Shown: positions 1,234-26,025 of the stretch, piece after piece
Position numbering within the stretch: the first letter of the stretch is position 1
Layout: each line of letters opens with the position of its first letter
From: Macrostomum lignano
Lineage: Eukaryota
Direction of reading: 5' to 3'
Assembly (NCBI GenBank): GCA_002269645.1
Contig: NIVC01005111.1
Location: forward strand, 1-26,025
Length of the DNA stretch: 26,025 nucleotides
Made by a program: the position numbers and the translations under genes
The notes under the pieces: model-generated
Databases searched by the model: none
What the model was told of the DNA's origin: nothing
Seen by the model: the letters and a program-made list of their open reading frames with translations, nothing else

Positions 1234-2589
1234 ATGGAATATGGCTGAGAAGACCTCAATTTTGACGCTTTCTTTGCTGCTGTCGGAATAGAGTCGACAA
1301 CTCGAGTTTCTGCTGAGTCCCTGGACGAAGCTGCTCTAAAAAAAAGAATCAAAGAAAGTTTGCCTGCCGCTACCCAAACGAAGGAAAAATGGGCAATGAA
1401 GTTATTTAATCTATGGAAAGAGACGCGCGTCAATCGTCAATTGGCAGGCGAAGAGTCGGGACTTATGGTTCTCAAGCCAACCGAGGATCTAACAAAATCC
1501 GACCTGAACCATTTGCTCCAGTATTTTGTGTTCGAAGTTAGTAAAGAGAATGGAGAAAAGTTTCCACCTGGCACCATCAAAGATCTAGTCTCCATGATCC
1601 AGCACCACTTTGTTTACGGACTTAAACGGACTCTTTCCATCTGGACTAATGCCGAGTTCGCTGAAACGCGACGTGCGCTAGATGCTGCCATGCGAGAGAC
1701 CGCCCGGGAAGGACAATTAAATGGTGGGCGGACAGCTGCACCAATTGCTTCGGATAGTGAGAATATCTTATGGGAGCGAGGTCTATTAGGAGATGATTCT
1801 CCGAAGGTGCTACTCAACACCCTAATATTCATGATCGGTAAAGTCTTTGGATTGCGAGGCGGTAGTGAGTTACACAGGCTCGAAATCAACAAGCAGCTGC
1901 AGCTATCTATCGAGGGAACGGACGAGGTTCTCGTGTACAAAGAGAGTTCCGTTTCAAAGACAAGGCCTGGTGGTTTGAAGACATTTAATAGGCCGCTCAA
2001 GCAAAATTCAGTGTTTCATACTCCCGGTCACGTTCGTTGCCTAGTGTGTCTGTATAAGAAGTACGTTGGTTATCGTCCGCCAGACTGCTCTAAGCCGCAG
2101 CTATTTCTATCGTGCATCCGCAAGGATGACACTATTCGCTCCGGCAAGTGGTACCAAAATCAATCGCTTGGTGTCCACAGTTTGGAAGCTGTTGTTCGGA
2201 ATCTGCTTGTTGGTCTACCTGAACCAAGTTCAGGGCGCTACACGAATCAGAGTCTTAGAAAGACCTGTGCCACCACGCTTCGGGATGCTGGAATTTCAAG
2301 GCCAGAAATTGCTCGTTTTACCGGTCATTCTTCATCTGCGATGGAGCGATACATCGGGCCATCAGCTAAAGTTGCTCGACTGGCCTCTGATGTTCTGCAG
2401 AACGTTTCTGTCTCGTCTGGATCATCAGCCTCGTCTGTTGAACCGTCTGAGCAAACTCGCGCTGTCTCGGCGTCAGCTGGTGAATCGTCGGTGCAAGTCG
2501 GCGCCGATCGAGTCACAGACGGGCGTCGTCGAGGTGTCAAGTCTATTGTCGTTGAAGATGGGCGGCTGGAAATAACGTTCCGTGACTAA
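1234..2589 (+). CDS. Crypton-type tyrosine recombinase (DUF3504-like); in-frame TGA at codon 5, open frame 1249-2589, next ATG at 1396
   Basis: Motifs FGLRGGSE (Arg, 1855), SKTRPGG (Lys), NQSLRKTCAT (HxxR box with His>Gln, 2248-2259), FTGHSS (His, 2326) and MERY (Tyr, 2350). N-terminal LPAATQTKEKWAMKLFNLW resembles Crypton YR N-termini. The ORF-track start at 1360 is a TTG, unlikely in a eukaryote. Confidence 0.88.
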
Positions 2590-2738: not shown

Positions 2739-3589
2739 CAAAAGGCGACCATCGACGGCTTAGACAGGCCACCCCGATTGATCTCCCCCAAGAAGTCGAT
2801 TGCCGTGGTCTGGATTTCTTCATCACTATCAAGGGGCTGTAGGTTGTCAGAGTCGAGCAGACGCTGCAAGACGCGCATCCTCGCTTCCTTTGCACAAAAT
2901 TCTTAGCAACTGCTCCACTTACACTTCCATCCGTGCCAACCAATTCTACGACCTTGCCTTGCGACAGCGCTGAGCCATTCAGACCAATGGAGACCTTGTG
3001 ATTCGGTGCAATGCAGATGGAGCACGCTACCTGGCAGACATGCTTCTGCTCCAGCATGAAGATGCACAGGAACTCGTTGCAAATTGCAGTTTGAAACCCA
3101 TCTTGGCCTCGTCCCCTCAGAATCTAGCAGTTCTTGAATTTCTCGTGGCGAGCAATCGATAATTGAATCAGTGGCAAAGAAGTCGGAAATCTGATCTGCA
3201 TCCAGGCGCCTTTTTTCCGCCTCCATACGCGCAGATGATGTCGCAGTGCATGTGATCCGAGCTGCTGGGCGGACAGAGGAAAGGTATGATGGTGCGTTTG
3301 GAAAAATAGTTGGCACCGCATCTTGTCTCAGATAACGCTTAGCCAGCTGGCCTTTCTTCGCTTTGCGAGTGAAATTGTTGTCTTGTGTTGACTCAACGAA
3401 GTCCTCAGATGTGAAATGCAGTGAGCAGATGCGAGAGTACTTGGTGGGTTCAAAGTCCTTCCTCGGATTCGCCTTGTTCCATTTTTCCAGTAGACTCGGC
3501 TTGTTAAGTGGAAACGTCACAGTCCTGTCTGGTGTCGAACTATTAGCGAAGCCACTCCTGCAGCCGAATGCCGAACACTTATTCACCAT
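2739..3589 (-). pseudogene. THAP-domain (THAP9/P-element-like) transposase remnant, internally deleted and frameshifted
   Basis: ATG at 3589, then a C2CH THAP finger (MVNKCSAFGC...W...ICSLHF...AVPTIF, 3302-3589). Frameshift near 3105. A C-terminal motif VSGAVAKNF...CASC/QRLL...INRGGLSKPS (1-nt frameshift near 2865) follows with no RNase H catalytic core in between. Confidence 0.8.
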
Positions 3590-3907
3590 AACGAAGGATA
3601 TGCTTTCATTATGCAGAGTCAAATGAAGAAAGTGAATTTAGTTGTATTCGATATAAGCCGCAGCAGTTTTTGATAAATGCATATCTATGGAAACAATTGG
3701 CCTCATGTGGTAATTTTTTTGCGAGAATTTTTTCGCTTCCAGTCCAGATGCTAAGTATAGAAGTCCATGGTCTCCCTCTTTATGGGGTCAAAAAACTACA
3801 GTGCATATTAATGTCGATGTGGGCCATAGACAAAAATTTATTTACATTTCATTGTAGAAAGTGGGGGCTTTGCCCCACACCCCCATTCTCACTCTCCCCC
3901 TCCTAGC

Positions 3908-4130: not shown

Positions 4131-4359
4131 TTCTACTTTCAGCTTCAGCTTTAAACTGCTGAATTCTATCTCAATTCCCGGAGAATAGGATAGGATCTCA
4201 TAATATTATTAACTATCCTATGGGCTCATCTCTTAAGTAGATTGCTACTATAAAAACGAAGCTTCTAGCAGGAAGAGAAGTATGCAAATAACAAACACAA
4301 ATGTTTTTGTTTTAATCGGTGCCTCCGATCAAACACCAAACAAGTCTTGATCGCGTTTG

Positions 4360-4365
4360 TTTATT
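4360..4365 (-). terminator. Polyadenylation signal AATAAA of the secreted peptide gene
   Basis: Minus-strand AATAAA lies ~34 nt downstream of the TAA stop at 4399-4401. Confidence 0.7.
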
Positions 4366-4398
4366 TAGCACAGGACAGTTCGGGTTATTCGAACTATT

Positions 4399-4686
4399 TT
4401 ACAGCTTGATGCAGCTGATGATCTGGATGGCGCTGCCACCGCACTTGCTGGCCAGGCAGGTGGCCAGCTTGCTGATGTTGGTGCCGCCGGAGAAGAAGCA
4501 GGTGATCAGGTTGGAGATCAGGCAGGTCGCGGAGCTGATGCCGTTCTGCTGCAGGCAGTTGGTGTCGATGCTCAGCACGGGCACGACCTCGTGAATGATG
4601 TCGTTAATGACCTCATTCTTCTGCTCAGGGGTGTAGGAGGCGGCGGCGAAGGCCACGAGAGCGAACAGGCAGGCGAGCTTGTACAT
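4399..4686 (-). CDS. Small secreted six-cysteine peptide precursor, 95 aa, intronless, family not recognised
   Basis: ATG in gccATG context. Signal-peptide-like N-terminus MYKLACLFALVAFAAA. Mature region C-x10-C-x7-C-x13-C-x4-C-x9-C. 89 of 95 codons end in G/C amid AT-rich flanks. TATA box upstream and AATAAA downstream. Confidence 0.9.
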   Translation of the reverse strand: MYKLACLFALVAFAAASYTPEQKNEVINDIIHEVVPVLSIDTNCLQQNGISSATCLISNLITCFFSGGTNISKLATCLASKCGGSAIQIISCIKL

Positions 4687-4754
4687 GGCTGTGCTGTTGT
4701 GTGCTTTGGCGCTGATGTGGAAGGCTTGTTCTAGTTAGTTGATGAATATGGTTT

Positions 4755-4783
4755 TGACTCGGCCAGCCGTGCCTTTATTTATA
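4755..4783 (-). promoter_or_regulatory. Core promoter (TATAAATA plus candidate initiator) of the secreted peptide gene
   Basis: Minus-strand TATAAATA at 4776-4783, with a TCA initiator-like site 28 nt downstream (A at 4755), implying a ~69-nt 5' UTR. Confidence 0.7.
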
Positions 4784-5739
4784 ATACCGCTGTGCCGCTG
4801 CAGGTGACGCTGTCTCGGACACTCCTGCTTCGCCCACGGCCCTGTCAAACTTGTCAATTAATTGGTTGTCCGAGGTCACCTGGCTGCGAATCGAACTCTG
4901 GCATGCAGTGTAGATTTTCCTTGGTTTTTAGGCTACTAAATTGTGTAGAGTTCAAAAAAGTTCGTGGGACACTGGCATGTGCGCGAGGCGTCAAAGAGTT
5001 TTAGTTGTCAGCGCGGACTTGATTTTATGCTATGTTTGGATTCTAGTTTGAAAAAATTGTCACCTACAAGTTACAAAATTGTTTGAAGGGTTATTTTCTG
5101 TTCTTGACCTTCTCTTCTCAGTTTGTAAACTCGCAAATCTATGATTTTCTGAAATTTCAATTCAGATAATCTGGAAGAAACTGCATGCGTAAGTGCGGAC
5201 CAGGATCGTACATTTCTGTGTATTGGCGCAATTTTAAGTAGCATGAATAGTAATAATAATAACAACTGATTACCAAGGACTACTTAAGAACACAGGACGT
5301 TACACTTGGAAATATTGGCAGAATTCTAAAAGGCCGATTTGAATGTGTGTCTATGGTTTTAGTGGCCTTTTTGCTATTTGAAGCAATGTGTATAATACAT
5401 GAATAGAAATTAAAGTCTAATGAATAAAGCTTTTTATATGCATGTGTTCCGACAAAATATTTATATTTATATAGAAGCAATGGTCAAAGCCTTTATCCAG
5501 GAGTCAATTTCAGCCTCTTCTTTCGGAAAAGTATACACGGTGCACCTTTTACCGCTTTTGTAGTTGCTGGTGCAGCCTGGAACGCAACACTTCGTCGGCA
5601 TCTTGTATAACTCAATTGACAATTTAATTTGAAGAAAGAAATAAAAGATCCAGAGAACACAGAAGAAGTGATCTGTTTGCGATCTTGTCTGCTTGGTGCT
5701 CTAAGCTAGACTTGTGGGTTATAAGAATCATACTCATAT

Positions 5740-7576: not shown

Positions 7577-7761
7577 TGTCATGACTAATGGGGTGGGGCC
7601 GCGTGGTAGGGGTGGAGCTTGTTTAGTAAGCCTAGTTAGCAGTACGTACGTTAATGTACATGCGCGGGCCACCGTGCCCCTTGGCCTATAAAATATATAG
7701 AGCGTGGAGGGTTTTGCCTCAACTGAGTTTACTCCAGAATAAGCGACTTGACTTCATTACA
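7577..7761 (+). repeat. 5' LTR (185 bp)
   Basis: tgtcatgact...cttcattaca; 183/185 identical to 12340-12524; contains TATAAAA. Confidence 0.97.
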
Positions 7762-7763
7762 AT

Positions 7764-7778
7764 TGGCGACGAGAATGG
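7764..7778 (+). promoter_or_regulatory. Primer-binding site, tRNA-Ser(GCU)-like, overlapping the gag ATG (7775)
   Basis: TGGCGACGAGAATGG starts 2 nt after the LTR. It matches 14/15 to the complement of the animal tRNA-Ser(GCU) 3' end as I recall it (TGGCGACGAGGATGG). Confidence 0.8.
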
Positions 7779-7976
7779 CTTCAGTTGGACAACTAGAGCC
7801 TTACGAAGAAGGCAAAGATTGGGACGCCTATCAAGAGCGAATGGACTCTTACATGCTTGCAAACGGCATAGAAGGCGACGACAAGAAGAAGGCAGTGTTT
7901 CTGACATTGATTGGCGAACGATGCTACGCAGTCCTGCGGGATCTCTGCAGTCTGACCAAGCCAACAGATCTGCAAT

Positions 7977-8895
7977 TAGGGATTCCAAAATCCCGACATT
8001 TTACAATCCCGGGATTGAATAGTCCCGAAATCCCGATGCTGTTGAAATCCCGGAATTCAAAATCCCGGAATCCCGGTGCTTTTGCAATCCCGGGATTAAA
8101 AATCCCGGGATTCGATTCCCAAAAAAATCCCGGGATTCAAATCCCGGATTTTTGGCTCCAATCCCGGGATCCCGGGATCCCGGGATTGGAATCCCTAAGC
8201 TAGACGGACTGTGCGGCGTGCCGCGTGCAGTAGTCATGGTCTCGCGACTCTCAGAGTCTCAGGGCCTTTTCATATTACCGATTCCAGAACCAGAATCGGT
8301 TCGGAATTCCAAGAAAAACAGCAGTATAACTATTAAACTCTGTTAATATTTGACTGCCTTAACAGCCTCACTTTGCACGATTTTTCACTTTCTTTTTGGC
8401 GATTGTCATTCAATAATAAAAACTTTATAGCACGTATCTCCCTCTAGTTATGGAGACAAAAAGTTATACTTCACAAAATGGTTCTGGTTCTGGAACCAGA
8501 ACAAGCAATATGAAAAGGCCCTCAGTCTCGTCTCGTGGTGGAAAACGAAAAAAAGTTAAAATTATCTATAATTTACAGTTCACAATAACAATTTTTAGCT
8601 CAATTAGGACAGGAGCTTTGCAAATGTGTAACGTTTCATTGAGAAACAGCAAAAACAAATAAATGTTTTATTATTCAAATAAACGTTTAGACTTTAAATT
8701 ATCTAATTTAGGCATTGAAAGGTTGTTCTAATCCCGGACCAATCCCGGGATTAAGGCCTTGAAATCCCGGGATCCCGATCCCGGACTTTTGCAATCCCGG
8801 GATTAAAAATCCCGGGATTCGATTCCCAAAAAATCCCGGGATTCAAATCCCGGATTTTTGGCCCCAATCCCGGGATCCCGGGATTGGAATCCCTA
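7977..8895. mobile_element. Non-autonomous hAT-type element (919 bp, composite) inserted in gag
   Basis: 8-bp TSD TCTGCAAT (7969-7976 and 8896-8903), 12-bp TIRs TAGGGATTCCAA, dense subterminal ATCCCGGGA(T) motifs. Removing it restores gag (KPTDLQ-YSALTEHL). An additional internal right end stops at 8197. Confidence 0.93.
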
Positions 8896-9309
8896 TCTGC
8901 AATACAGCGCCCTCACCGAGCACCTTCAAAAGTACTTCAAACCGAAGAAGCCAGTAATCGCTGAACGGTTCAAGTTCTACAAGCGAGCACAAAAGGACGG
9001 AGAGACGGCTGCTCAATTTCTGGCTGCGCTGCGGAATCTGACCGATTCGTGCGAGTTCGAGGGGTTTCGAGAAGAAGCTCTCCGAGACTGTTTCGTCTGC
9101 AGTCTTCGAGACCAGCGGACCCAGCAGCGACTCCTGATGGAGGAGAAGCTCACGCTGGATGCGGCCAAGAAAATTGCCCTCGCGGCGGAGATTCCAAAGT
9201 CGGAAACTGAGCAGTGGAAATCGAGCTCAGAGGTCAGCTCAATCCAGCAGGTAGCGCCAGACTCGAGGGCGTGCTACAGGTGCGGATTCAAAGGCCACCT
9301 GTCGGCAGC

Positions 9310-9325
9310 CTGCCACAGTGCCACT
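9310..9325 (+). other. hAT/Ac-type excision footprint (+8 bp) between the gag zinc knuckles
   Basis: ctgccacA-Gtgccact equals a duplicated CTGCCACT with both junction bases changed to their complements. Deleting 8 bp restores [34 protein letters not shown] in frame with the protease. Confidence 0.8.
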
Positions 9326-12300
9326 TCAGGACCGCAAAGTGCCACAACTGCGGGAAATTTGGACACCTGCAGAAAGTTTGCCGCTCAGCCAAGAAAGCCT
9401 CCAGTACAACGAAAGCCGGACGGTCAGAGAATGGACCAGCGCACGCAATGCAAACGGAAGAGGAGGAGGAAGCAGCAACAGGCCGGATTTCGCAAGTCAC
9501 TGCATCGGCCAAGAATATCAGCGTAAGCCTGCTGGTGAATGACCAGCCCCTCACCATGCAGCTGGACACCGGTGCCTGCGTCAGCCTCGTACCAGAGTCG
9601 TTGTGAAAGCAGCTCGGCCGACCTCAGCTGACACCAACACGCCTGCGACTCCGGACCTGGACGGGCGAGCCAATACAAGTCAAGGGAACAGCCGAGGTCA
9701 TGGTCAACTACGACGGAAGACAGCATCATAAGCTGCCGCTGGTGGTCACCAGTCAGACCGGAGCCTGCCCATTGCTAGGACGCAATTGGCTGGAAAAAGT
9801 GCGACTCAACTGGACTCAGTTGTTTGCCAACCAGATCAGCCAGGCGCCGGCGCAGAAAAGCGGGCCTCTCGACCAGATGCTGGAGGAGTTCGCTGATGTT
9901 TTCGACGAGAGCCTGGGGCAGTTGAAGGATCAGACAGTCGCACTGAGACTTAAAAGTGACGCACATCCTCGATTCTGCAAGGCCAGACCCGTGCCATTCG
10001 CAGTGCGGGACAAGCTGGAGCTCGAGCTCCAGGACATGCTCAACAAAGGGTACGCCAGTGGTTCCGGTACTCAAGGCAGACGGCTCAGTCCGACTGTGCG
10101 GCGACTATAAACTGACGTTGAACCCTTAGCTCCACATCGACCAGTACCCGCTGCCTACGCCTGAAGAGCTTTACGAGCAGGTGGGACAGGGTCAGCTGTT
10201 CTCAAAACTCGATCTGTCACAATGTTATCTTCAGTTTCCACTCGACGAAGAGAGCTGCAAGCTGACGACCATCAACACGCATAAAGGGCTTTTCGAGTAC
10301 CTCAGGTTGCCATTTGGCGTCAGTTCGGCTCCTGCGATTTGCCAGAGGCTGATGGAAAAACTTTTGAAGGGCGTGCCGGGAGTCTGTTGCCGCATTGATG
10401 ACATCCTGGTCTCCGGTCCGTCAATGAGTGAACACCAGCGCTTCGCAAGGTACTGACCAGGCTGAGAGCGGTGGGCTTGCGGCTGAAGCGAATCAAGTGC
10501 AAATTTCTGCAAGAAGAAGTCGAATACCTGGGCTCGTTGCTCCTCTGTATCAACTGTTGAGGAAGGCGACGGACTGGCGGTGGGCTGAGACGGAGGACCG
10601 AGCCTGGGACAATCTTAAGCAAGAACTGAGTTAGGACAGCGTGCTGACGCATTTCAACGAGCAGCTTCCAGTGGTGGTGGCCGCGGATGCTTCATCGGTC
10701 GGCATCGGCGCGGTGCTGTCCCACACGATGGAGGACGGCCCGGAACGGCCGGTGACTTTTGCTTCAAGGACGCTGTCAGCAGCGGAGCGAAATTACTCGC
10801 AAATTGAGAAAGAAGCCCTCGCCATCGTGTTCGCCATCAAGCGGTTCCACCAGTACCTGTTCGGCCGGAGCTTCACGATAATTACGGATCATCAGCCGTT
10901 GACGACGATTTTCGGACCGAAGGTTGGCATCTCCCCGACTGCAGCAGGGCGACTTCAGAGATGGGCACTGCTGCTGTCAGGGTACAGCTTACAGCTTACA
11001 GTACAGCATCCGGTTCCGCAAGACTGCTCAGCACAGCAACGCAGACGGCCTGTCTCGCTTGCCGCTGCAGATGAAGGACGACAGCCCAGACGACGACGAT
11101 CGGGTCTGTCAGCTGACGGGCGAATTCCCATTGACGGCGGCGGATGTAGCGGCAGCAACGAAGCGAGATGACGAGCTTCGAGATATTCTCCGGATGATAA
11201 TGACTGGCTGGCCAGAGTTGGTTCCGCCGCGGCTCGAGCCCTACTTTCGTCGTCGACTAGAACTAAGCGTGGAAGACGGCTGCGTGATCTGGGGAACTCG
11301 CGTGCTGGTTCCGGAAGCGTTGCGACCTGGAGTTCTGCTCGAGTTACACGTGGAACATTTCGGCATGGCCCGGATGAAAAGTGTCGCCAGAACCTTCGTC
11401 TGGTGGCCAGGAATGGATGCTGACATCGAGTCGGTTGCCAGCAGCTGCCAAGCCTGCCAATCCGTTAAGTTGCATCCGGTGCTGGCTCCACTGCACCCCT
11501 GGGTGTGGCCAGACCAGCCCTGGGACCGCATCCACGTTGACTTTGCCGGGCCGGTTCGAGGCCGCCAGTTTCTCCTCGTAGTCGACGCGCACTCAAAGTG
11601 GCCGCATGTGGAGGCCGTGTCAACACTCTAATCAGCCGAGCTGGTTCGCAAGCTGCGAGTGTTGTTTGCACAATGGGGCCTGCCGAGAGAACTGGTATCG
11701 GACAACGGTCCAGCATTCATCAGTCAAGGATTTAGCGATTTCTGCAAAGCAAATGGAATTCGCCACACAAGAAGCAGTCCATATCACGCCAAGACCAACG
11801 GACTGGTGGAACGGCTGGTGAAGTCGTTCAAGATGGCCATGGAGGCGTCACAGAGCAGTCAGCCGGACCTCGACATCCGGCTGTGCAACTGAATGCTGGG
11901 CTACCGAGCTAGCCCGCACCCAACGACCGGTCGGACACCAGCGGAGCTCTTCCTGAAGCGGCAGCTCCGGACTCGAATGGACCTGCTGCGGCCGTCAGCC
12001 CGGGATCGAGTACTGCAGGAGCAATCCGCCCAGAAACGACAGCACGACCGGCGGTCGCGGGAGCTGCCAGAGGAGCCGTGGTCGGAGGCCTGGGCCAGGG
12101 ACTACTGGCAACTGCGGGGCCGGCGAGTCGAGAGCGACGAACCTGACGGTCCAGCAGCCGGGACCGAGCCAGCTGAAGCTGCGGACTCGACCGGGACCGG
12201 CGCGGAGCACCCGGAGCCGGAGCCGACGCGCCCTGCGGACTGCAGCCTGCACGCGGCGACGGCCACCTGAGAAGCTGACCTACTCGAAACTCTGGAGCTG

Positions 12301-12326
12301 TGATTGATAGGGAGCGGACTTCTTCT

Positions 12327-12339
12327 GAGAGGGGAAAAG
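12327..12339 (+). promoter_or_regulatory. Polypurine tract
   Basis: gagaggggaaaag immediately precedes the 3' LTR. Confidence 0.9.
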
Positions 12340-12524
12340 TGTCATGACTTATGGGGTGGGGCCGCGTGGTAGGGGTGGAGCTTGTTTAGTAAGCCTAGTT
12401 AGCAGTACGTACGTTAATGTACATGCGCGGGCCACCGTGCCCCTTGGCCTATAAAATATACAGAGCGTGGAGGGTTTTGCCTCAACTGAGTTTACTCCAG
12501 AATAAGCGACTTGACTTCATTACA
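12340..12524 (+). repeat. 3' LTR (185 bp)
   Basis: Matches 7577-7761 except at 2 positions; followed by the TSD GATGC. Confidence 0.97.
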
Positions 12525-13147
12525 GATGCTTCTATTGAAAACATGCGAATTGAATAGCAACACTGTGCTGCAGCGGGAGCAAAGCTAAGCACGGGACGGT
12601 GCATGAGAGGCTTGCTGGTGTACCGATTAGAAAGCTGGCGACGCACTCAGCATACTGCTACAAGTAGCAAGGCAGTAAGACTGGCTGATTTTAAGCATTT
12701 TATGCGCATGCAGTTTTAAAAACCTTTGCAGGTTGTTTACAAAATCGAACTATCAAATGGTCGATAGGGAGAGCTTTGGTCAGTTAAATAAACCAAAATA
12801 TGAAGGCGGAATCAGCATTGGATTTGCAGCTCATCAAGTAAATGGTTGCGAACGGCGGGCTCGCAGGCAGGTTTGCAAACTTCAGCGGTTCTTTGGTAAT
12901 TCGGGAGGCGCTGAAGCAGACATGCAGTTACAGATCAGGCTTGGTCTGACTGCAGTTGTCTCTCAGCGTCTGCAGGACCTCCGGGTCTCTCATTGCGCTG
13001 TCAAACGAACGGTTTTGATGAGGACTCGCGCACAGGCAAGGCGCCTCTCGGAGCAGTAGCTCAAATTTGTGCGCCATCAGAGCCCGGAAAACTCCCAAGA
13101 AGGCGCTACAAGGAGCTAATTAACAGGTGAAGAACACCGGCGCGGAT

Positions 13148-13656
<509 letters not shown>

Positions 13657-14490
13657 GTAAGACTTCTCTCAGGTCTCCGGATCTACTTCTTTCTTTCTTG
13701 GTTTTCCAGCGGTTTTGTTCTAGCGCTTCCACTGCCCTCGAAGCCTAAGAGAGCTTACAAAGGAGATCGCTACTGGGCTGCTTATGACTTGTGCCTGTAG
13801 CACAAATAACAAATATGAGTCTTTAGATATTTTGGTGAGCTTCACTGGAGTCCAGGCTATAGAATTAACGTCTCAGCGAGCGTTGCCCATTTCGGGGCCG
13901 AGGCCGTGTCTATTTTATAAATCTTTTGATACACGTCATCCCCCGCCGCTGATTAGCAACGGCGGGGTGCCAGAACAGACGCAGCAACATTAGATTAGCG
14001 CGTTGCTACGGGGCGAGAGAGATAATTTGATAACTGTTCGTTGGTCACATCAGGCGATGGTTAAAGGTCAGTCCAGGGTTCAGTATTCGAATTGTTCGCA
14101 CGTCAGACCACCCGTGCGTCCCTCGGTGAGTCGTGCTTTTGCTCCCTGGGCAGATCCACGTACGTCACCGCTGACCTTGCCTGTTGGCCATTGCTCTATC
14201 TCGCCCGCCAGTCGGGGTATCTTGCCGTATCGCTTCTCCTGGCACCGCGCCGACTGACTCTGCCTGGTATCTCGGCTGACGTTCATGTCATCTCGCTTGG
14301 TCTGAAATCTTGGGGAAAGGTGACAGTTAACTTCTTATCATATCTTTAATTTATTTCACTTTCTAGCTGTTCTTTTAATTTCTTTTACTTAGCTGTCTTA
14401 TCTCTAAGTTCTGTTTCCAGTCTTTAAGCTTTCGCTTTACCTTTGACGACCTTTTAATGATGCTTATTATTTGCTAATTTCTAATCCCTA

Positions 14491-14514
14491 TACTACTACT
14501 ACTACTACTACTAC

Positions 14515-14569
<55 letters not shown>

Positions 14570-14580
14570 CCACTACTACA

Positions 14581-14647
<67 letters not shown>

Positions 14648-14662
14648 ATACTACAATAATTA
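14491..14662 (+). repeat. (CTA)n microsatellite, ~170 bp, interrupted
   Basis: CTA repeats with ccc and caa interruptions, decaying into aat/aca variants on the right. Confidence 0.95.
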
Positions 14663-15693: not shown

Positions 15694-16662
15694 CTGAGCT
15701 CAAGACCCCAAAACCCACCCCACCAGGTGGCGTTCAGACCCCCGGGAAGTTGACAGGCGCGGTCATAAATCATGAGCAAAACCGAATAAAGGTCACTTGT
15801 CTAGACATCCTGGCGCCAAAAGTGACTGCAAAAAGCCCATAAATCAAAGGAGAAGGTAAAAGAGCGAGTGGGGAGGAGGCTGGAAAGACCTCCTTGACCC
15901 AGACAGGCTGGAGCCAAAAGTGACAGCCAAACCGCAGTAAATTATTAAAAATATTGAAAAAGTCACAAATCAGGGGGTCAGAATGAGATTAAAAACATTC
16001 CTCCCAGACTTAGTGTCGCCTGTCTAGACTGTTAGAGGTCAAACCACTTCAGACCTGGATAGCCTGACCTTCAGAGATGCGTAAACAACCCAAAATTAGA
16101 ATCCTAAGGGAAGTACATTAAGCCTCTAACATAATTAATAGTAATGTCATAAAATGACATAGGACTCAGCCTAAATGAGAGAATAGAGAGAAATTCCTAA
16201 GCTAGCCTACTGACGGTAGGGGAAAAAGCGCATCGGAGCAAAATGTGCGGTTTTAAGATTGAAAAAAGACGCGTCCTCATCATTTATGCAATAGTGAAAA
16301 CAAAAAGACGGTTTTATGTAAATACCAGATGCAGAAGGAACTCTGAGATCTTGAACAGATTCATTTGAAGGTGCTCTATTTCAACAAGCTGCCGTTGGGA
16401 TAAGCTGAAAATTATCGACACAGATCCGTGTGGATAAAATAGGAATTTTATTGACACGGCCTAAAGACTTGAATTGTGGTAGCTATTTCAATAGGCTGCC
16501 GTGGGGTGTGAATAAAATTGGAATTATCAGCACGGGACCGTGGGGATAAGCACTTCCTTTTTAATATGGAAGTTTCAAGCTTACTAGTAGCCAACATAAA
16601 AATAATAGAAAAATATGGTATATACTCCCCATTTATACTAGTGCTAGGACAATAGGTAAATA

Positions 16663-16807
16663 ATAAACGCCGTTTATTTCACATTCTGTGGTTAGAATGT
16701 CCGAGGCTGCATTTAATGGTTCCGAGGCGAGCAAAGCGAGCCGAGGACCATTGATTGTAGCCGAGGATATTCTAACCACAGACTATGGTGAATTAAGCGG
16801 CGTTTAT
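16663..16807 (+). other. G.A-mismatch hairpin, copy 2
   Basis: Same as 893-1037. Confidence 0.9.
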
Positions 16808-17003
16808 CATATATGAACTTCGATATCTTATTTTTCGAGGGCATCCCATCTGATTGATAGACATTATAGGCTTAGGCCATTTGATTCCGACCATAGACAA
16901 ATCAAATACGTTTCTCACGAAGATGCAGTCACGAAGCAGCCAGTCAATCAGTGGTGGCAAAAAGTAAAAGCCAAATTCAGAGTCGCTTCTTATACAATAC
17001 AAT

Positions 17004-18359
17004 ATGGAATATGGCTGAGAAGACCTCAATTTTGACGCTTTCTTTGCTGCTGTCGGAATAGAGTCGACAACTCGAGTTTCTGCTGAGTCCCTGGACGAAG
17101 CTGCTCTAAAAAAAAGAATCAAAGAAAGTTTGCCTGCCGCTACCCAAACGAAGGAAAAATGGGCAATGAAGTTATTTAATCTATGGAAAGAGACGCGCGT
17201 CAATCGTCAATTGGCAGGCGAAGAGTCGGGACTTATGGTTCTCAAGCCAACCGAGGATCTAACAAAATCCGACCTGAACCATTTGCTCCAGTATTTTGTG
17301 TTCGAAGTTAGTAAAGAGAATGGAGAAAAGTTTCCACCTGGCACCATCAAAGATCTAGTCTCCATGATCCAGCACCACTTTGTTTACGGACTTAAACGGA
17401 CTCTTTCCATCTGGACTAATGCCGAGTTCGCTGAAACGCGACGTGCGCTAGATGCTGCCATGCGAGAGACCGCCCGGGAAGGACAATTAAATGGTGGGCG
17501 GACAGCTGCACCAATTGCTTCGGATAGTGAGAATATCTTATGGGAGCGAGGTCTATTAGGAGATGATTCTCCGAAGGTGCTACTCAACACCCTAATATTC
17601 ATGATCGGTAAAGTCTTTGGATTGCGAGGCGGTAGTGAGTTACACAGGCTCGAAATCAACAAGCAGCTGCAGCTATCTATCGAGGGAACGGACGAGGTTC
17701 TCGTGTACAAAGAGAGTTCCGTTTCAAAGACAAGGCCTGGTGGTTTGAAGACATTTAATAGGCCGCTCAAGCAAAATTCAGTGTTTCATACTCCCGGTCA
17801 CGTTCGTTGCCTAGTGTGTCTGTATAAGAAGTACGTTGGTTATCGTCCGCCAGACTGCTCTAAGCCGCAGCTATTTCTATCGTGCATCCGCAAGGATGAC
17901 ACTATTCGCTCCGGCAAGTGGTACCAAAATCAATCGCTTGGTGTCCACAGTTTGGAAGCTGTTGTTCGGAATCTGCTTGTTGGTCTACCTGAACCAAGTT
18001 CAGGGCGCTACACGAATCAGAGTCTTAGAAAGACCTGTGCCACCACGCTTCGGGATGCTGGAATTTCAAGGCCAGAAATTGCTCGTTTTACCGGTCATTC
18101 TTCATCTGCGATGGAGCGATACATCGGGCCATCAGCTAAAGTTGCTCGACTGGCCTCTGATGTTCTGCAGAACGTTTCTGTCTCGTCTGGATCATCAGCC
18201 TCGTCTGTTGAACCGTCTGAGCAAACTCGCGCTGTCTCGGCGTCAGCTGGTGAATCGTCGGTGCAAGTCGGCGCCGATCGAGTCACAGACGGGCGTCGTC
18301 GAGGTGTCAAGTCTATTGTCGTTGAAGATGGGCGGCTGGAAATAACGTTCCGTGACTAA
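17004..18359 (+). CDS. Crypton-type tyrosine recombinase, copy 2 (same TGA at codon 5 and same His>Gln)
   Basis: Translation identical to copy 1. Confidence 0.88.
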
Positions 18360-18508
18360 GAGGATGTACATGTAAGAACTCTCATCCGTAAACTGTTTGA
18401 ATTGAATCATACAATTAGTAGAGTATGTAAGTTTCGTTGTCGTGTGAGTTGTTGGTTGCTAAATATAATGCTGGCTTGTATATAATGCTGGCTAAATATA
18501 ATGCTGGC

Positions 18509-19359
18509 CAAAAGGCGACCATCGACGGCTTAGACAGGCCACCCCGATTGATCTCCCCCAAGAAGTCGATTGCCGTGGTCTGGATTTCTTCATCACTATC
18601 AAGGGGCTGTAGGTTGTCAGAGTCGAGCAGACGCTGCAAGACGCGCATCCTCGCTTCCTTTGCACAAAATTCTTAGCAACTGCTCCACTTACACTTCCAT
18701 CCGTGCCAACCAATTCTACGACCTTGCCTTGCGACAGCGCTGAGCCATTCAGACCAATGGAGACCTTGTGATTCGGTGCAATGCAGATGGAGCACGCTAC
18801 CTGGCAGACATGCTTCTGCTCCAGCATGAAGATGCACAGGAACTCGTTGCAAATTGCAGTTTGAAACCCATCTTGGCCTCGTCCCCTCAGAATCTAGCAG
18901 TTCTTGAATTTCTCGTGGCGAGCAATCGATAATTGAATCAGTGGCAAAGAAGTCGGAAATCTGATCTGCATCCAGGCGCCTTTTTTCCGCCTCCATACGC
19001 GCAGATGATGTCGCAGTGCATGTGATCCGAGCTGCTGGGCGGACAGAGGAAAGGTATGATGGTGCGTTTGGAAAAATAGTTGGCACCGCATCTTGTCTCA
19101 GATAACGCTTAGCCAGCTGGCCTTTCTTCGCTTTGCGAGTGAAATTGTTGTCTTGTGTTGACTCAACGAAGTCCTCAGATGTGAAATGCAGTGAGCAGAT
19201 GCGAGAGTACTTGGTGGGTTCAAAGTCCTTCCTCGGATTCGCCTTGTTCCATTTTTCCAGTAGACTCGGCTTGTTAAGTGGAAACGTCACAGTCCTGTCT
19301 GGTGTCGAACTATTAGCGAAGCCACTCCTGCAGCCGAATGCCGAACACTTATTCACCAT
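18509..19359 (-). pseudogene. THAP-transposase remnant, copy 2
   Basis: Same as 2739-3589. Confidence 0.8.
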
Positions 19360-19677
19360 AACGAAGGATATGCTTTCATTATGCAGAGTCAAATGAAGAA
19401 AGTGAATTTAGTTGTATTCGATATAAGCCGCAGCAGTTTTTGATAAATGCATATCTATGGAAACAATTGGCCTCATGTGGTAATTTTTTTGCGAGAATTT
19501 TTTCGCTTCCAGTCCAGATGCTAAGTATAGAAGTCCATGGTCTCCCTCTTTATGGGGTCAAAAAACTACAGTGCATATTAATGTCGATGTGGGCCATAGA
19601 CAAAAATTTATTTACATTTCATTGTAGAAAGTGGGGGCTTTGCCCCACACCCCCATTCTCACTCTCCCCCTCCTAGC

Positions 19678-19847
19678 CATGGATGAATGAATAGAATTTT
19701 TCTATGAATAGAATTCGGCGAAGGCCGAAAATTGTCTATGGCAATCATCAACCAATGAAAAGGCACGGGGGGGAACCGGATGCAAAAGAGTCAAAAACGA
19801 AAATAGCCAGAGCCAGAATAGCAATCCATTCTATTCATTCATCCATG
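19678..19847. mobile_element. 170-bp TIR element, copy 2
   Basis: Same as 3908-4077. Confidence 0.65.
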
Positions 19848-20168
19848 TGGGCACCCCATGCAATATTTCTATTTTCTACTATTGTAAGTAGAAAATAGAA
19901 TTCTACTTTCAGCTTCAGCTTTAAACTGCTGAATTCTATCTCAATTCCCGGAGAATAGGATAGGATCTCATAATATTATTAACTATCCTATGGGCTCATC
20001 TCTTAAGTAGATTGCTACTATAAAAACGAAGCTTCTAGCAGGAAGAGAAGTATGCAAATAACAAACACAAATGTTTTTGTTTTAATCGGTGCCTCCGATC
20101 AAACACCAAACAAGTCTTGATCGCGTTTGTTTATTTAGCACAGGACAGTTCGGGTTATTCGAACTATT

Positions 20169-20456
20169 TTACAGCTTGATGCAGCTGATGATCTGGATGG
20201 CGCTGCCACCGCACTTGCTGGCCAGGCAGGTGGCCAGCTTGCTGATGTTGGTGCCGCCGGAGAAGAAGCAGGTGATCAGGTTGGAGATCAGGCAGGTCGC
20301 GGAGCTGATGCCGTTCTGCTGCAGGCAGTTGGTGTCGATGCTCAGCACGGGCACGACCTCGTGAATGATGTCGTTAATGACCTCATTCTTCTGCTCAGGG
20401 GTGTAGGAGGCGGCGGCGAAGGCCACGAGAGCGAACAGGCAGGCGAGCTTGTACAT
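20169..20456 (-). CDS. Small secreted six-cysteine peptide precursor, copy 2
   Basis: Translation identical to 4399-4686, with the same TATA and AATAAA. Confidence 0.9.
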   Translation of the reverse strand: MYKLACLFALVAFAAASYTPEQKNEVINDIIHEVVPVLSIDTNCLQQNGISSATCLISNLITCFFSGGTNISKLATCLASKCGGSAIQIISCIKL

Positions 20457-21509
20457 GGCTGTGCTGTTGTGTGCTTTGGCGCTGATGTGGAAGGCTTGTT
20501 CTAGTTAGTTGATGAATATGGTTTTGACTCGGCCAGCCGTGCCTTTATTTATAATACCGCTGTGCCGCTGCAGGTGACGCTGTCTCGGACACTCCTGCTT
20601 CGCCCACGGCCCTGTCAAACTTGTCAATTAATTGGTTGTCCGAGGTCACCTGGCTGCGAATCGAACTCTGGCATGCAGTGTAGATTTTCCTTGGTTTTTA
20701 GGCTACTAAATTGTGTAGAGTTCAAAAAAGTTCGTGGGACACTGGCATGTGCGCGAGGCGTCAAAGAGTTTTAGTTGTCAGCGCGGACTTGATTTTATGC
20801 TATGTTTGGATTCTAGTTTGAAAAAATTGTCACCTACAAGTTACAAAATTGTTTGAAGGGTTATTTTCTGTTCTTGACCTTCTCTTCTCAGTTTGTAAAC
20901 TCGCAAATCTATGATTTTCTGAAATTTCAATTCAGATAATCTGGAAGAAACTGCATGCGTAAGTGCGGACCAGGATCGTACATTTCTGTGTATTGGCGCA
21001 ATTTTAAGTAGCATGAATAGTAATAATAATAACAACTGATTACCAAGGACTACTTAAGAACACAGGACGTTACACTTGGAAATATTGGCAGAATTCTAAA
21101 AGGCCGATTTGAATGTGTGTCTATGGTTTTAGTGGCCTTTTTGCTATTTGAAGCAATGTGTATAATACATGAATAGAAATTAAAGTCTAATGAATAAAGC
21201 TTTTTATATGCATGTGTTCCGACAAAATATTTATATTTATATAGAAGCAATGGTCAAAGCCTTTATCCAGGAGTCAATTTCAGCCTCTTCTTTCGGAAAA
21301 GTATACACGGTGCACCTTTTACCGCTTTTGTAGTTGCTGGTGCAGCCTGGAACGCAACACTTCGTCGGCATCTTGTATAACTCAATTGACAATTTAATTT
21401 GAAGAAAGAAATAAAAGATCCAGAGAACACAGAAGAAGTGATCTGTTTGCGATCTTGTCTGCTTGGTGCTCTAAGCTAGACTTGTGGGTTATAAGAATCA
21501 TACTCATAT

Positions 21510-21956
21510 AACAACAACAACAAAATACGCTGTCAGGATGGCAAAAGTCAGCGTCACAGGGCGCGCCTCATGGCTTGGGCGCGAACAAAGGCCGCGCCAC
21601 CGGCAGTGTCCGGGGCGCCGGCGTTAGCTAGCAGACAGTCGACATAACGCCGAGTTCGCGCTTGACCTCGCCGGTAGGGTGCCTGCAGCGTGAGCAGCAG
21701 CACCTCCTGCATCGGCTGTGGGCAGTACGACTCGGCGCGGATGAGATGGCCTGCGAGCTGGAGTCGCCGATGGCACAGTAGATCGCGCCACACGCCCTCA
21801 ATTACCCCAGCTAATGCTGGCACCCATTTTTTTTACAGCTGGATGAACTGAAGCAATGCAGAGTTAAGTGGTCTTGTTCAAGGACACAAATTGCTCCGAG
21901 TGGGTCGAGAATCAAACCCCCGACGCTCTAATCACTACTAGGCTACTGCAACCCCC
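21510..21956 (-). mobile_element. tRNA/CORE-like/RTE-tail SINE, copy 2
   Basis: Same as 5740-6186. Confidence 0.72.
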
Positions 21957-22480
21957 TCCTAGGCTACAACACTGCATGCTATAAACGTCAAATCCAATTA
22001 TCTGTAGCGTTTCTGACAAAAAAGACTTAAAACGATGCCCAGAGCCTTTGTTAGGTAGACAGTAGTATAGCTAACTTTTTACTTGCAAATATGTGAAAAA
22101 CGCAAATAAGGCTGTTGCGCTCCTTCCCGAGTTCTGTCAGTTGTACCTAAATTGAACTCGCTGCTCTGGGAGTTGCTAGATAGTACCGCAGTACTGCCTA
22201 TCGATTTGCCTGAGAAGAACCTAAAACGTTAGCCTTAGACTTGGTAGGGCTGCTGCCACCTTGGTTTGCGGACTCGACTCGTCGGAAGATTTGTATATCC
22301 GTAACCTGAAATAAATAAAAAGTCGCTCGGAGCAAGACAAATCTGAAACTGTCTCGACAGTTGATCGAGATGTTCCTACAATTGCTGTGCGAATCTGAAA
22401 ATCTGTAAGCCTGAAATGAGAGAGGGGGAGCTCCTTGCCGGCGGACTCCGGTTGAGGAAAAACAGCTTCCAGGTGCTCCG

Positions 22481-22770
22481 TATTTATAGCCGAGCGGGCC
22501 CCGAAAGTCACGTGAGTTCCATGCGATGAGCGCGTGAAACTTTCTTATTTGGACCTCAGAGTCATGCAAGAGAGGCGTGATTCAAGGCCAACTTCCAAAT
22601 AAGGCAAACTGTCAGGCAACAGTGGCGTGACTCAAGGTCAAATGCCTCACTCTATGCATGCACAGTCACGTGCTTTTATGTGCTAAAAAAATTTGGGTGG
22701 ATGAGTCATCCTGTTTACTCCCTCCAGACAGCCATTACACTCTGCATGCGGGTGAGCAGGGGGTGAGTCA
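22481..22770 (-). promoter_or_regulatory. TATA/AP-1/E-box module, copy 2
   Basis: Same motifs as 6712-7001. Confidence 0.5.
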
Positions 22771-23345
22771 TCCTGCTTCTCCTCTTCAACGCGGGTGGGG
22801 AAATCATTGTGTGTGGCCACCTGCACGCCTGCTCGGCGATCGGGCAGTAAACACTTAGGCCCAGCACAGGGCATCTCTCCCTAGATCAGGCGGACTGGAC
22901 TGCTGTGCAGCGGAACACAGTCCCTAGGAAAGGCTAGTGAATGCTGCGACATAACTAGTTTGCAGCCAGTCGCTACAAGACGAACTAGCTAAAATTGTGA
23001 CTGCGCCGCGCCAATGCAGCTTCCAAACTGTCCTGTGCGCTTAAATAAGTTTTGTCAGTGGGGCAGAGCGCGCAACCGTATTGTCCAAAAATTGTGCTAG
23101 AATAAGGATTGCACTGTTGCGGCCCACCAGTCCAACGCAATTTGGTGCCGAATCTGTGTCGCAACTCGCAACGCGCTGCTTCAATGAGCAAAGAGCTAAT
23201 TAATAAATTCAGTCGATAGTCAGAATTCTGGGATACTATAATCAGAAGGGGCAGAAGTCGAGACTGGACTCACATTATGTACAAGAAAATTTGTAAGCAA
23301 TGGACCAAGAACCAGTTGGGGTCAGTCAAGATCTTCGGCAGATGC

Positions 23346-26025
23346 TGTCATGACTTAAGGGGTGGGGCCGCGTGGTAGGGGTGGAGCTTGTTTAGTAAGC
23401 CTAGTTAGCAGTACGTACGTTAATGTACATGCGCGGGCCACCGTGCCCCTTGGCCTATAAAATATACAGAGCGTGGAGGGTTTTGCCTCAACTGAGTTTA
23501 CTCCAGAATAAGCGACTTGACTTCATTACAATTGGCGACGAGAATGGCTTCAGTTGGACAACTAGAGCCTTACGAAGAAGGCAAAGATTGGGACGCCTAT
23601 CAAGAGCGAATGGACTCTTACATGCTTGCAAACGGCATAGAAGGCGACGACAAGAAGAAGGCAGTGTTTCTGACATTGATTGGCGAACGATGCTACGCAG
23701 TCCTGCGGGATCTCTGCAGTCTGACCAAGCCAACAGATCTGCAATTAGGGATTCCAAAATCCCGACATTTTACAATCCCGGGATTGAATAGTCCCGAAAT
23801 CCGATGCTGTTGAAATCCCGGAATTCAAAATCCCGGAATCCCGGTGCTTTTGCAATCCCGGGATTAAAAATCCCGGGATTCGATTCCCAAAAAAATCCCG
23901 GGATTCAAATCCCGGATTTTTGGCTCCAATCCCGGATCCCGGGATTGGAATCCCTAAGCTAGACGGACTGTGCGGCGTGCCGCGTGCAGTAGTCATGGTC
24001 TCGCGACTCTCAGAGTCTCAGGGCCTTTTCATATTACCGATTCCAGAACCAGAATCGGTTCGGAATTCCAAGAAAAACAGCAGTATAACTATTAAACTCT
24101 GTTAATATTTGACTGCCTTAACAGCCTCACTTTGCACGATTTTTCACTTTCTTTTTGGCGATTGTCATTCAATAATAAAAACTTTATAGCACGTATCTCC
24201 CTCTAGTTATGGAGACAAAAAGTTATACTTCACAAAATGGTTCTGGTTCTGGAACCAGAACAAGCAATATGAAAAGGCCCTCAGTCTCGTCTCGTGGTGG
24301 AAAACGAAAAAAAGTTAAAATTATCTATAATTTACAGTTCACAATAACAATTTTTAGCTCAATTAGGACAGGAGCTTTGCAAATGTGTAACGTTTCATTG
24401 AGAAACAGCAAAAACAAATAAATGTTTTATTATTCAAATAAACGTTTAGACTTTAAATTATCTAATTTAGGCATTGAAAGGTTGTTCTAATCCCGGACCA
24501 ATCCCGGGATTAAGGCCTTGAAATCCCGGGATCCCGATCCCGGACTTTTGCAATCCCGGGATTAAAAATCCCGGGATTCGATTCCCAAAAAATCCCGGGA
24601 TTCAAATCCCGGATTTTTGGCCCCAATCCGGGATCCCGGGATTGGAATCCCTATCTGCAATACAGCGCCCTCACCGAGCACCTTCAAAAGTACTTCAAAC
24701 CGAAGAAGCCAGTAATCGCTGAACGGTTCAAGTTCTACAAGCGAGCACAAAAGGACGGAGAGACGGCTGCTCAATTTCTGGCTGCGCTGCGGAATCTGAC
24801 CGATTCGTGCGAGTTCGAGGGGTTTCGAGAAGAAGCTCTCCGAGACTGTTTCGTCTGCAGTCTTCGAGACCAGCGGACCCAGCAGCGACTCCTGATGGAG
24901 GAGAAGCTCACGCTGGATGCGGCCAAGAAAATTGCCCTCGCGGCGGAGATTCCAAAGTCGGAAACTGAGCAGTGGAAATCGAGCTCAGAGGTCAGCTCAA
25001 TCCAGCAGGTAGCGCCAGACTCGAGGGCGTGCTACAGGTGCGGATTCAAAGGCCACCTGTCGGCAGCCTGCCACAGTGCCACTTCAGGACCGCAAAGTGC
25101 CACAACTGCGGGAAATTTGGACACCTGCAGAAAGTTTGCCGCTCAGCCAAGAAAGCCTCCAGTACAACGAAAGCCGGACGGTCAGAGAATGGACCAGCGC
25201 ACGCAATGCAAACGGAAAGAGGAGGAGGAAGCAGCAACAGGCCGGATTTCGCAAGTCACTGCATCGGCCAAGAATATCAGCGTAAGCCTGCTGGTGAATG
25301 ACCAGCCCCTCACCATGCAGCTGGACACGCGGTGCCTGCGTCAGCCTCGTACCAGAGTCGTTGTGAAAGCAGCTCGGCCGACCTCAGCTGACACCAACAC
25401 GCCTGCGACTCCGGACCTGGACGGGCGAGCCAATACAAGTCAAGGGAACAGCCGAGGTCATGGTCAACTACGACGGAAGACAGCATCATAAGCTGCCGCT
25501 GGTGGTCACCAGTCAGACCGGAGCCTGCCCATTGCTAGGACGCAATTGGCTGGAAAAAGTGCGACTCAACTGGACTCAGTTGTTTGCCAACCAGATCAGC
25601 CAGGCGCCGGCGCAGAAAAGCGGGCCTCTCGACCAGATGCTGGAGGAGTTCGCTGATGTTTTCGACGAGAGCCTGGGGCAGTTGAAGGATCAGACAGTCG
25701 CACTGAGACTTAAAAGTGACGCACATCCTCGATTCTGCAAGGCCAGACCCGTGCCATTCGCAGTGCGGGACAAGCTGGAGCTCGAGCTCCAGGACATGCT
25801 CAACAAAGGGTACGCCAGTGGTTCCGGTACTCAAGGCAGACGGCTCAGTCCGACTGTGCGGCGACTATAAACTGACGTTGAACCCTTAGCTCCACATCGA
25901 CCAGTACCCGCTGCCTACGCCTGAAGAGCTTTACGAGCAGGTGGACAGGGTCAGCTGTTCTCAAAACTCGATCTGTCACAATGTTATCTTCAGTTTCCAC
26001 TCGACGAAGAGAGCTGCAAGCTGAC
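23346..26025 (+). mobile_element. Mag-like Gypsy element, copy 2 (5' LTR 23346-23530; runs off the window within RT)
   Basis: Same GATGC flank, PBS, hAT insertion, footprint (25068-25083) and stop codons as copy 1. Confidence 0.96.
23746..24653. mobile_element. Composite hAT-type element, copy 2 (908 bp)
   Basis: Same TCTGCAAT TSD and TIRs; 11 bp shorter than copy 1 within the CCCGGGAT arrays. Confidence 0.92.

Follow-up and report, generated by a model that had tools for sequence, protein, structure and literature searches.

The described systems that lie closest to the protein considered here are saposins, in which six cysteines pair as C1-C6, C2-C5 and C3-C4; the precursors of conotoxins and amphibian antimicrobial peptides (AMPs), in which a conserved prepro region stands beside a hypervariable cysteine domain; and insect odorant-binding proteins (OBPs) together with the water-borne pheromones of Aplysia (attractin) and Euplotes, the pheromones being small helical proteins with three disulfides and all three families consisting of fast-evolving, lineage-restricted, tandemly duplicated genes. 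Here we compare with them a gene at positions 4399-4686 of NIVC01005111.1, a contig of the Macrostomum lignano assembly Mlig_3_7 (GCA_002269645.1) that we analysed in its entirety (26,025 bp; hereafter the window). For its product and paralogues no relationship could be detected with saposins, with curated families or with solved folds. The reading that we favour, at a probability of roughly 0.55, is that this is a genuine TATA-driven M. lignano gene whose product is an abundant, disulfide-locked, hydrophobic protein, secreted by a specialised cell and binding a hydrophobic partner.

The open reading frame (ORF) lies on the minus strand, with its ATG at 4686 and a TAA at 4401-4399, and translates as MYKLACLFALVAFAAASYTPEQKNEVINDIIHEVVPVLSIDTNCLQQNGISSATCLISNLITCFFSGGTNISKLATCLASKCGGSAIQIISCIKL; GenBank annotates it as a single, uninterrupted piece of 288 nt, and an in-frame stop stands 15 codons 5' of the ATG. 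Every sequence feature listed in the original prediction, which had been made from the letters of this stretch—the leader, the cysteine spacing, the acidic and lysine counts, the G/C content of third codon positions (GC3, 89/95), the TATA box, the initiator and the AATAAA—was reproduced; the strand is one point that the prediction had left unstated. The ORF is a genuine intronless gene, not a chance ORF, because its paralogues keep all six cysteines of the mature protein and because its third positions are so strongly biased: GC3 is 0.94, against 42/95 at first and 40/95 at second positions, and even at an assumed background GC3 of 0.65 the binomial probability of 89/95 G/C-ending codons is 4e-11. 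The claim that the locus encodes a genuine small secreted protein on a cysteine scaffold, one that curated families fail to recognise, is likewise borne out, Pfam and PDB searches having been negative. Read on the plus strand, 4399-4686 is open but meaningless, and an overlapping antisense ORF of 91 aa (4319-4594, plus strand) owes its existence to the GC3-rich codons of the real gene and is not a second gene.

The leader combines a single basic residue with a hydrophobic core of 13 residues and has small residues at -3/-1 (AAA/S or AAS/Y), with cleavage expected after A16 or S17, and is almost invariant among close paralogues. Its predicted removal would leave a mature protein of 78-79 residues (about 8.3 kDa) that is charge-poor (11% D/E/K/R) and unusually hydrophobic for a secreted protein (grand average of hydropathy, GRAVY, +0.45). 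The mature cysteines stand at residues 44, 55, 63, 77, 82 and 92, leaving gaps of 10-7-13-4-9, and a seventh (C6) falls within the leader. Charge is unevenly distributed: residues 17-43 hold five D/E, residues 44-95 none and three K, so that the cysteine domain has a net charge of +3 and an isoelectric point (pI) of 8.7 within a mature protein that is, as a whole, slightly acidic (pI 5.5). The signal-like leader, a mature chain of <150 residues and an even count of conserved cysteines are those of a small secreted cysteine-rich protein. An internal ATCL repeat, to which the original prediction had drawn attention, is indeed present twice, but a repeated four-residue word arises in 7% of shuffled sequences, and we reject it as a trace of internal duplication.

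AlphaFold2 modelling of the mature protein from nine sequences (predicted local distance difference test, pLDDT, 83.7; predicted template-modelling score, pTM, 0.68) gave five helices in one compact domain spanning residues 17-95. Helix 1 occupies residues 20-34 (mature residues 4-18; pLDDT 70-78), the four others lie in residues 44-95, and a predicted beta-bridge between residues 39-40 and 93-94 ties the loop after helix 1 to the C terminus; a first run on six sequences with the signal peptide included reached a pLDDT of 65 and was not used for conclusions. Three disulfides formed by the six invariant cysteines probably lock this fold. Foldseek returned nothing from PDB with an E value better than 2.8 or a template-modelling (TM) score above 0.45 among the 50 matches listed, and nothing from BFVD better than E=0.77; the eight members tested had no relevant-family match in Pfam at E<=10, and the family profile matched nothing relevant among PDB sequences at E<=10. 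These HMMER/Pfam and AlphaFold-Foldseek searches yielded no clear match to a characterised family, and judging from the model the fold is apparently new, a small helical disulfide domain without a match among solved structures.

Three word-indexed searches (5.8 billion proteins) and one exhaustive HMMER scan (1.84 billion representatives) assembled a family of eight clusters at 90% identity, comprising 26 member sequences. Seven of the eight clusters have M. lignano records, and the eighth (P0003) derives solely from two unidentified Logan sequencing runs; outside M. lignano, the database-wide searches produced only P0003 and one weak, probably spurious repeat match from the full HMMER scan (P0010), which we discarded. 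So far, then, the family appears almost only in M. lignano. A profile extended by the divergent members P0006, P0007 and P0009 and by an ORF at locus L009 drew in no further proteins. In the full-length members, the most distant of them at 38-40% identity, all six mature cysteines are unchanged.

At the genomic level, NIVC01000671.1 (L001) carries four intact copies and one truncated copy within 12 kb, the truncated one (1508-1768, minus strand) consisting of the last 47 residues of a family gene joined to unrelated sequence. The L009 ORF (12246-12635, plus strand), 2 kb downstream of P0009, encodes a divergent, unannotated and more highly charged paralogue with the scaffold C-x10-C-x8-C-x13-C-x4-C-x12-C; with this gene and the truncated L001 copy counted, the family is larger and more diverse than protein databases show. 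One database entry, P0008 (979 aa), has a family member (residues 100-188) apparently fused to a long unrelated sequence and looks like a merged annotation. The L001 cluster and the two copies in the window make this, within the collections searched, a tandemly arrayed and lineage-restricted family. Other members are solitary among ordinary genes, as at L008, between DIP2-like and PBD-domain genes, and it is these ordinary contexts that lead us to reject the idea of the gene as transposon cargo.

Comparison of the window gene with five paralogues by the Nei-Gojobori method gave an overall ratio of nonsynonymous to synonymous divergence (dN/dS) of 0.55-1.04, which conceals two regimes. Conservation in the mature protein is highest in residues 17-43 (dN/dS 0.1-0.26), whereas for the cysteine domain most comparisons give a dN no lower than dS (dN/dS about 1 or more), the cysteines themselves being fixed. 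We treat the cysteine domain as fast-evolving and positive selection as not proven, because codon bias or gene conversion would lower dS.

Upstream of the gene lies a compact module in which a family-specific element, the TATA box and a predicted 5' untranslated region of about 66 nt all fall within 130 bp of the ATG. Transcription is predicted to start at about -69; P0001, a paralogue model that is partial at its 5' end, starts 66 nt ahead of the conserved ATG, the position expected for a TATA-directed start. The upstream element has two matches in the window, one per gene copy, and none elsewhere (0.10 expected by chance); it also precedes the paralogues in L001, L004 and L005 and an identical copy of the gene in L006. 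Most paralogues have GCGTCA(C/G)CTGCAG about 15-25 nt 5' of a TATA-like box and at a like distance from the ATG, the box itself lying at -95 to -103. Wherever the 13-mer is matched exactly in the fetched loci, a family gene follows downstream; L008 and L009 contain no exact match, and the element before P0006 in L008 (49% protein identity) was seen by eye and lacks the motif's first base. In the P0002 group, the 127-aa models (L001 4989-5118) begin at an ATG within their own TATA-like box, CATAAATG; their 32-residue N-terminal extension is, on this arrangement, almost certainly an annotation artefact, the real start being MYKL/MYNV.

Codon use offers an indirect proxy for expression. The gene's GC3 lies above that of neighbouring host genes (0.44-0.68 in their open frames) and of the transposon ORFs (0.47-0.67), and values of 0.83-0.95 recur in all annotated family members except the most distant one. 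GC content is 59% in the coding sequence (CDS) and 40% in 2 kb of flanking sequence, the enrichment being restricted to third positions of the CDS; with flanks of that composition, GC-biased gene conversion is an unlikely cause. Of 94 non-Met codons, 78 are those chosen in a codon-optimised green fluorescent protein (GFP) designed from the 100 most abundant M. lignano transcripts. High GC3 and optimal codons together probably reflect selection on translation and hence high expression, in keeping with the highly expressed product, putatively of a gland or of the immune system, that had been proposed for the gene. The Mlig_3_7 annotation was built from transcript assemblies alone (StringTie/TACO and a de novo transcriptome), novel transcripts having been filtered at reads per kilobase per million (RPKM) >= 0.5 (PMC5730564), which means that a transcript model exists for the gene.

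We picture its product as follows. A single specialised type of secretory cell would produce the protein in large amounts and release it to the outside; the mature chain would fold as a compact bundle of five short amphipathic helices locked by three disulfides. Its partner outside the cell would be hydrophobic, whether a lipid or membrane surface or a small ligand of apolar character, and would be bound in a mode akin to that of saposin-type or odorant-binding-type carriers, without relationship to them; a saposin-like mode, with a lipid or apolar ligand bound, would be the most natural guess for such a protein. Its site of action may be an interface with a quickly changing partner, perhaps microbes, food or a mating partner.

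Several points weigh against this picture. Composition and the predicted fold are all that speak for a hydrophobic partner, and the AlphaFold model draws on just nine closely related sequences. In the comparisons that mark the cysteine domain as fast-evolving, dS is 0.03-0.25 there against 0.4-0.6 in residues 17-43, and a dS depressed by codon bias or gene conversion inflates dN/dS. The restriction to M. lignano holds for the collections searched, which may not include the Macrostomum transcriptomes or the genomes of M. cliftonense and M. hystrix, and the runs behind P0003 are of unidentified origin. Because the gene copies are identical, reads are not assignable to one or other, and the window's own copies are putatively transcribed. 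The full text and supplements searched hold no expression, localisation or protein record for the gene or its paralogues: none appears in PMC5946080, PMC12896417, PMC7336406, PMC5977470 or PMC5730564, and literature searches turned up no M. lignano cell atlas and no publication on the family.

More tentatively, we would extend the favoured reading to the history and control of the whole family: a new five-helix disulfide fold that arose in Macrostomum and became a diversifying effector at an arms-race interface with microbes or a mate, with a 40-bp module of E-box and TATA box driving its expression and with its copy number changing through unequal recombination at (TAC)n-bearing repeats. Should the changes in the cysteine domain reflect positive selection, the family would give access either to sexual conflict in a hermaphrodite or to innate defence. 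Flatworms have many orphan secreted families, and this is one of them; an apparent new fold, a mistaken automatic name and a compact conserved promoter are each noteworthy. The last has a practical side, in that M. lignano is a flatworm model with working transgenesis, for which compact, strong, cell-type-specific promoters are needed, and the module is a candidate.

Table 1. Coordinates in the window of the gene, its signals and the duplicated unit
Feature	Position	Strand	Remarks
CDS, copy A	4399..4686	-	95 codons + TAA, intronless; GCA_002269645.1 annotates a 95-aa product
Signal-peptide coding part, residues 1-16 MYKLACLFALVAFAAA	4639..4686	-	Predicted from hydropathy and the -3/-1 rule
Residues 17-43, conserved acidic amphipathic helix (5 D/E) and the loop after it	4558..4638	-	
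Residues 44-95, hydrophobic six-Cys domain C-x10-C-x7-C-x13-C-x4-C-x9-C, C-terminus CIKL	4402..4557	-	
Poly(A) signal AATAAA	4360..4365	-	33 nt past the stop codon
Initiator-like TCAAAAC, TCA(+1)AAAC	4752..4758	-	28 nt downstream of the TATA box; read from the sequence
TATA box TATAAATA	4776..4783	-	Begins 97 nt 5' of the ATG
Family-specific upstream element GCGTCACCTGCAG (E-box CACCTG beside a half site like the cAMP response element, CRE)	4798..4810	-	15 nt 5' of the TATA box
CDS, copy B	20169..20456	-	Identical to copy A
Copy B with poly(A) signal (20130-20135), TATA box (20546-20553) and upstream element (20568-20580)	20130..20580	-	Offset +15770
First copy of the duplicated segment	1..10257		= 15769-26025; full unit 15.77 kb
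Repeat R, about 1.1 kb, including (TAC)169 at 13149-13655	12523..13655		In the joining segment 10258-15768

The gene is present twice in the window (Table 1), and the original prediction held that it had been duplicated together with its regulatory signals; copies A and B indeed show 100% identity across at least 1.2 kb, a stretch that takes in the promoter and the poly(A) signal. What had been described as an array, and as a likely target of selection on copy number, amounts to two copies of a 15.77-kb unit, partly transposon-derived, the second of them ended by the contig end. The two stretches of this direct repeat differ by 11 mismatches in 10,241 aligned bases, together with a few 1-2-base and one 9-base insertions or deletions (about 99.9% identity at aligned bases, 99.67% with gaps counted). 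Near-identity of this degree speaks for recency, not for selection, and the (TAC)n-bearing repeat R in the joining segment points to unequal recombination rather than to a property of the gene. The gene has been duplicated as a passenger of its unit.

A second locus bears on how the tandem form arose. On the 206-kb scaffold NIVC01000768.1 (L006) the unit is single-copy, with the same 95-aa protein annotated, and is flanked on both sides by copies of R (975-2070 and 15804-16883) that are 92.8% identical to each other; the R of the window is 97.5% and 95.5% identical to these two, against 99.7-99.8% for the rest of the unit. Within the joining segment, the (TAC)n microsatellites at 13149-13655 (169 units) and 14491-14654 (54 units) bracket an 835-bp unique segment, 13656-14490, which the fetched 20 kb of the other scaffold lacks, a difference that suggests deletion or insertion by recombination between the (TAC)n tracts. 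We consider the tandem duplication very recent and most likely produced by unequal recombination between copies of R.

The alternative to this history is that the duplication is an assembly artefact or a redundant haplotype copy, with a single gene at the locus, which we regard as possible, though on balance improbable. Much about the contig would fit such an error: it ends inside the second copy; many of the few differences between copies are single-base insertions or deletions, like long-read consensus errors; the unit is single-copy on the far longer scaffold; the junction falls within microsatellite-bearing repeats, which are prone to false overlaps; and duplicated non-repetitive blocks make up 180 Mb of the assembly, owing to the karyotype of the sequenced line (PMC5730564). 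The 835-bp segment and the lower identity of R than of the rest of the unit argue otherwise, and because of these two differences we conclude that the contig represents a separate locus or haplotype and not a re-assembly of the same reads. Copies of R on either side of a single-copy unit are, in addition, the exact substrate from which unequal crossing-over would generate the tandem form.

The unit also contains a long terminal repeat (LTR) element of about 5 kb and ORFs with DUF3504 and THAP domains. The element, of Ty3/gypsy type, spans 7577-12524 between 185-nt LTRs (7577-7761 and 12340-12524; 98.9% identical), and a second, truncated copy starts at 23346; its RVT_1, RNase H and integrase zinc-binding domains fall in several different frames, reflecting either degradation or long-read indel errors. 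Tandem repeats with periods of 40, 25 and 24 nt (AAAAATCCCGGGATT...) occur in its 5' part at 7999-8145 and 8805-8851 and, in the second copy, at 23768-23913 and 24564-24610; another array with a 40-nt period lies at 18081-18915 of L006. A 409-aa ORF with DUF3504/QRICH1-like domains (1360-2589, plus strand) is convergent with a 239-aa THAP-domain ORF (2903-3622, minus strand), and copies of the two stand at 17130-18359 and 18673-19392; both have low GC3 (0.47) and are probably transposon-derived. About 280 nt past the gene's poly(A) signal is a perfect 20-nt inverted repeat (3908-3927/4058-4077, with 130 nt between the arms), which recurs 15770 nt further on and may be a small insertion resembling a miniature inverted-repeat transposable element (MITE). 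Rfam and tRNA scans detected no RNA genes in the window.

As to what the protein does, a reproductive role is unlikely in our estimation, and deserves weighing all the same: the product would be a protein of the prostate or the seminal fluid, or else a signal of pheromone type, acting on a receptor of the mating partner and not on lipids. Small size, secretion, lineage restriction, tandem duplication and a fast-evolving exposed domain are all in its favour, and so is the biology of the animal, as PMC5977470 describes many prostate-limited transcripts of M. lignano that are regarded as putative seminal fluid proteins, and PMC7336406 reports fast evolution of reproduction-related genes in the genus. 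The supplements of these two papers, which may not hold sequences, contain neither identifiers of the paralogues nor peptide words of the family, and no link of the family to the prostate or the tail emerged from them. This proposal concerns biological role, and it is compatible with most of the favoured picture of a bulk-secreted, disulfide-locked protein.

We find more doubtful the proposal, made in the original prediction, of an antimicrobial-peptide or toxin precursor in which the acidic residues 17-43 would be a pro-piece neutralising a cationic, disulfide-rich domain of residues 44-95 and removed on secretion. The split in charge between the two segments first suggested it, and the lineage-specific, tandemly expanded family, with its conserved leader and N-terminal segment adjoining a hypervariable domain on a cysteine framework, has the look of such precursors. 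The evidence does not support the proposal, which we consider improbable. No dibasic, furin-type or other recognisable processing site is found at 43/44 (...SIDTN/C...) in any member; the putative mature part, at only +3, is very hydrophobic rather than amphipathic and cationic; AlphaFold places the supposed pro-piece helix, with its beta-bridged loop, inside the single compact domain; and the constraint on residues 17-43 is the strongest in the mature protein. In divergent P0009 and in the L009 ORF the acidic helix is missing or replaced and the cysteine domain kept, a pattern that fits an accessory helix and a pro-piece equally.

The weakest alternative is that the family consists of divergent saposin-like proteins (SAPLIPs), which bind and disturb lipid membranes. 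UniProt's automatic name for P0004 and P0007 is 'Saposin B-type domain-containing protein', and a signal peptide, about 80 residues, six cysteines and an all-helical prediction do resemble saposins. None of the eight members matches Pfam SapB_1 or SapB_2 at E<=10, and the family profile finds no saposin chain in PDB at that threshold. A profile built from human saposins A-D, whose input sequences match saposin entries at E about 1e-33 to 1e-36, reaches as far as surfactant protein B, plant swaposin, acyloxyacyl hydrolase, NK-lysin, amoebapore and caenopore in PDB (E<=6e-5), yet its hhalign alignment with the family has a probability of 0.2% over 8 columns. The cysteine gaps stand against 2-27-10-24-5 in saposins, or 2-27/28-10/11-23/25-5 across human saposins A-D, and the earlier view that the spacing is of neither saposin nor defensin type is upheld; helix 1 has no cysteine, so that the fold-defining staples from helix 1 to helix 4 cannot form; and no saposin-fold chain is among the 50 Foldseek matches listed, a comparison made with a predicted model by a method that is weak on small helical proteins. 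With cysteine spacing, Pfam, hhalign and Foldseek all negative, we reject saposin membership as highly improbable; the UniProt name of the paralogues appears to be wrong and merits correction.

Set beside the known systems, the family is not a saposin, defensin or OBP by any test run. Unlike the defensins and knottins, which have a cysteine-stabilised fold containing beta-sheet and a strongly cationic mature peptide released by processing, it has an all-alpha prediction, a charge of +3 for residues 44-95, a slightly acidic mature protein and no dibasic site at the 43/44 boundary. With the putative seminal fluid proteins of M. lignano it shares the animal and the general class of gland-secreted proteins, and the search of PMC5977470 gave no sign that the family is among them. 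The likeness to conotoxin and AMP precursors lies in the conserved leader and N-terminal segment, the variable cysteine domain and the fixed cysteines, and the difference in the lack of a processing site, the incorporation of the helix into the fold and the weakly cationic, hydrophobic character of the cysteine domain. Like it, saposins have a secreted, all-helical, hydrophobic domain with six cysteines in about 80 residues, whereas their charged residues make up 22-29% and their GRAVY is about 0, against 11% and +0.45 here. The family has no match to Pfam PBP_GOBP, a Foldseek match to Anopheles AgamOBP5 is insignificant (E=3.2, TM 0.28), and the cysteine spacing presumably falls outside the classic six-cysteine pattern of OBPs; what links this family to insect OBPs, Aplysia attractin and the Euplotes pheromones is a shared kind of protein, small, secreted, predicted or known to be helical and to be built around three disulfides.

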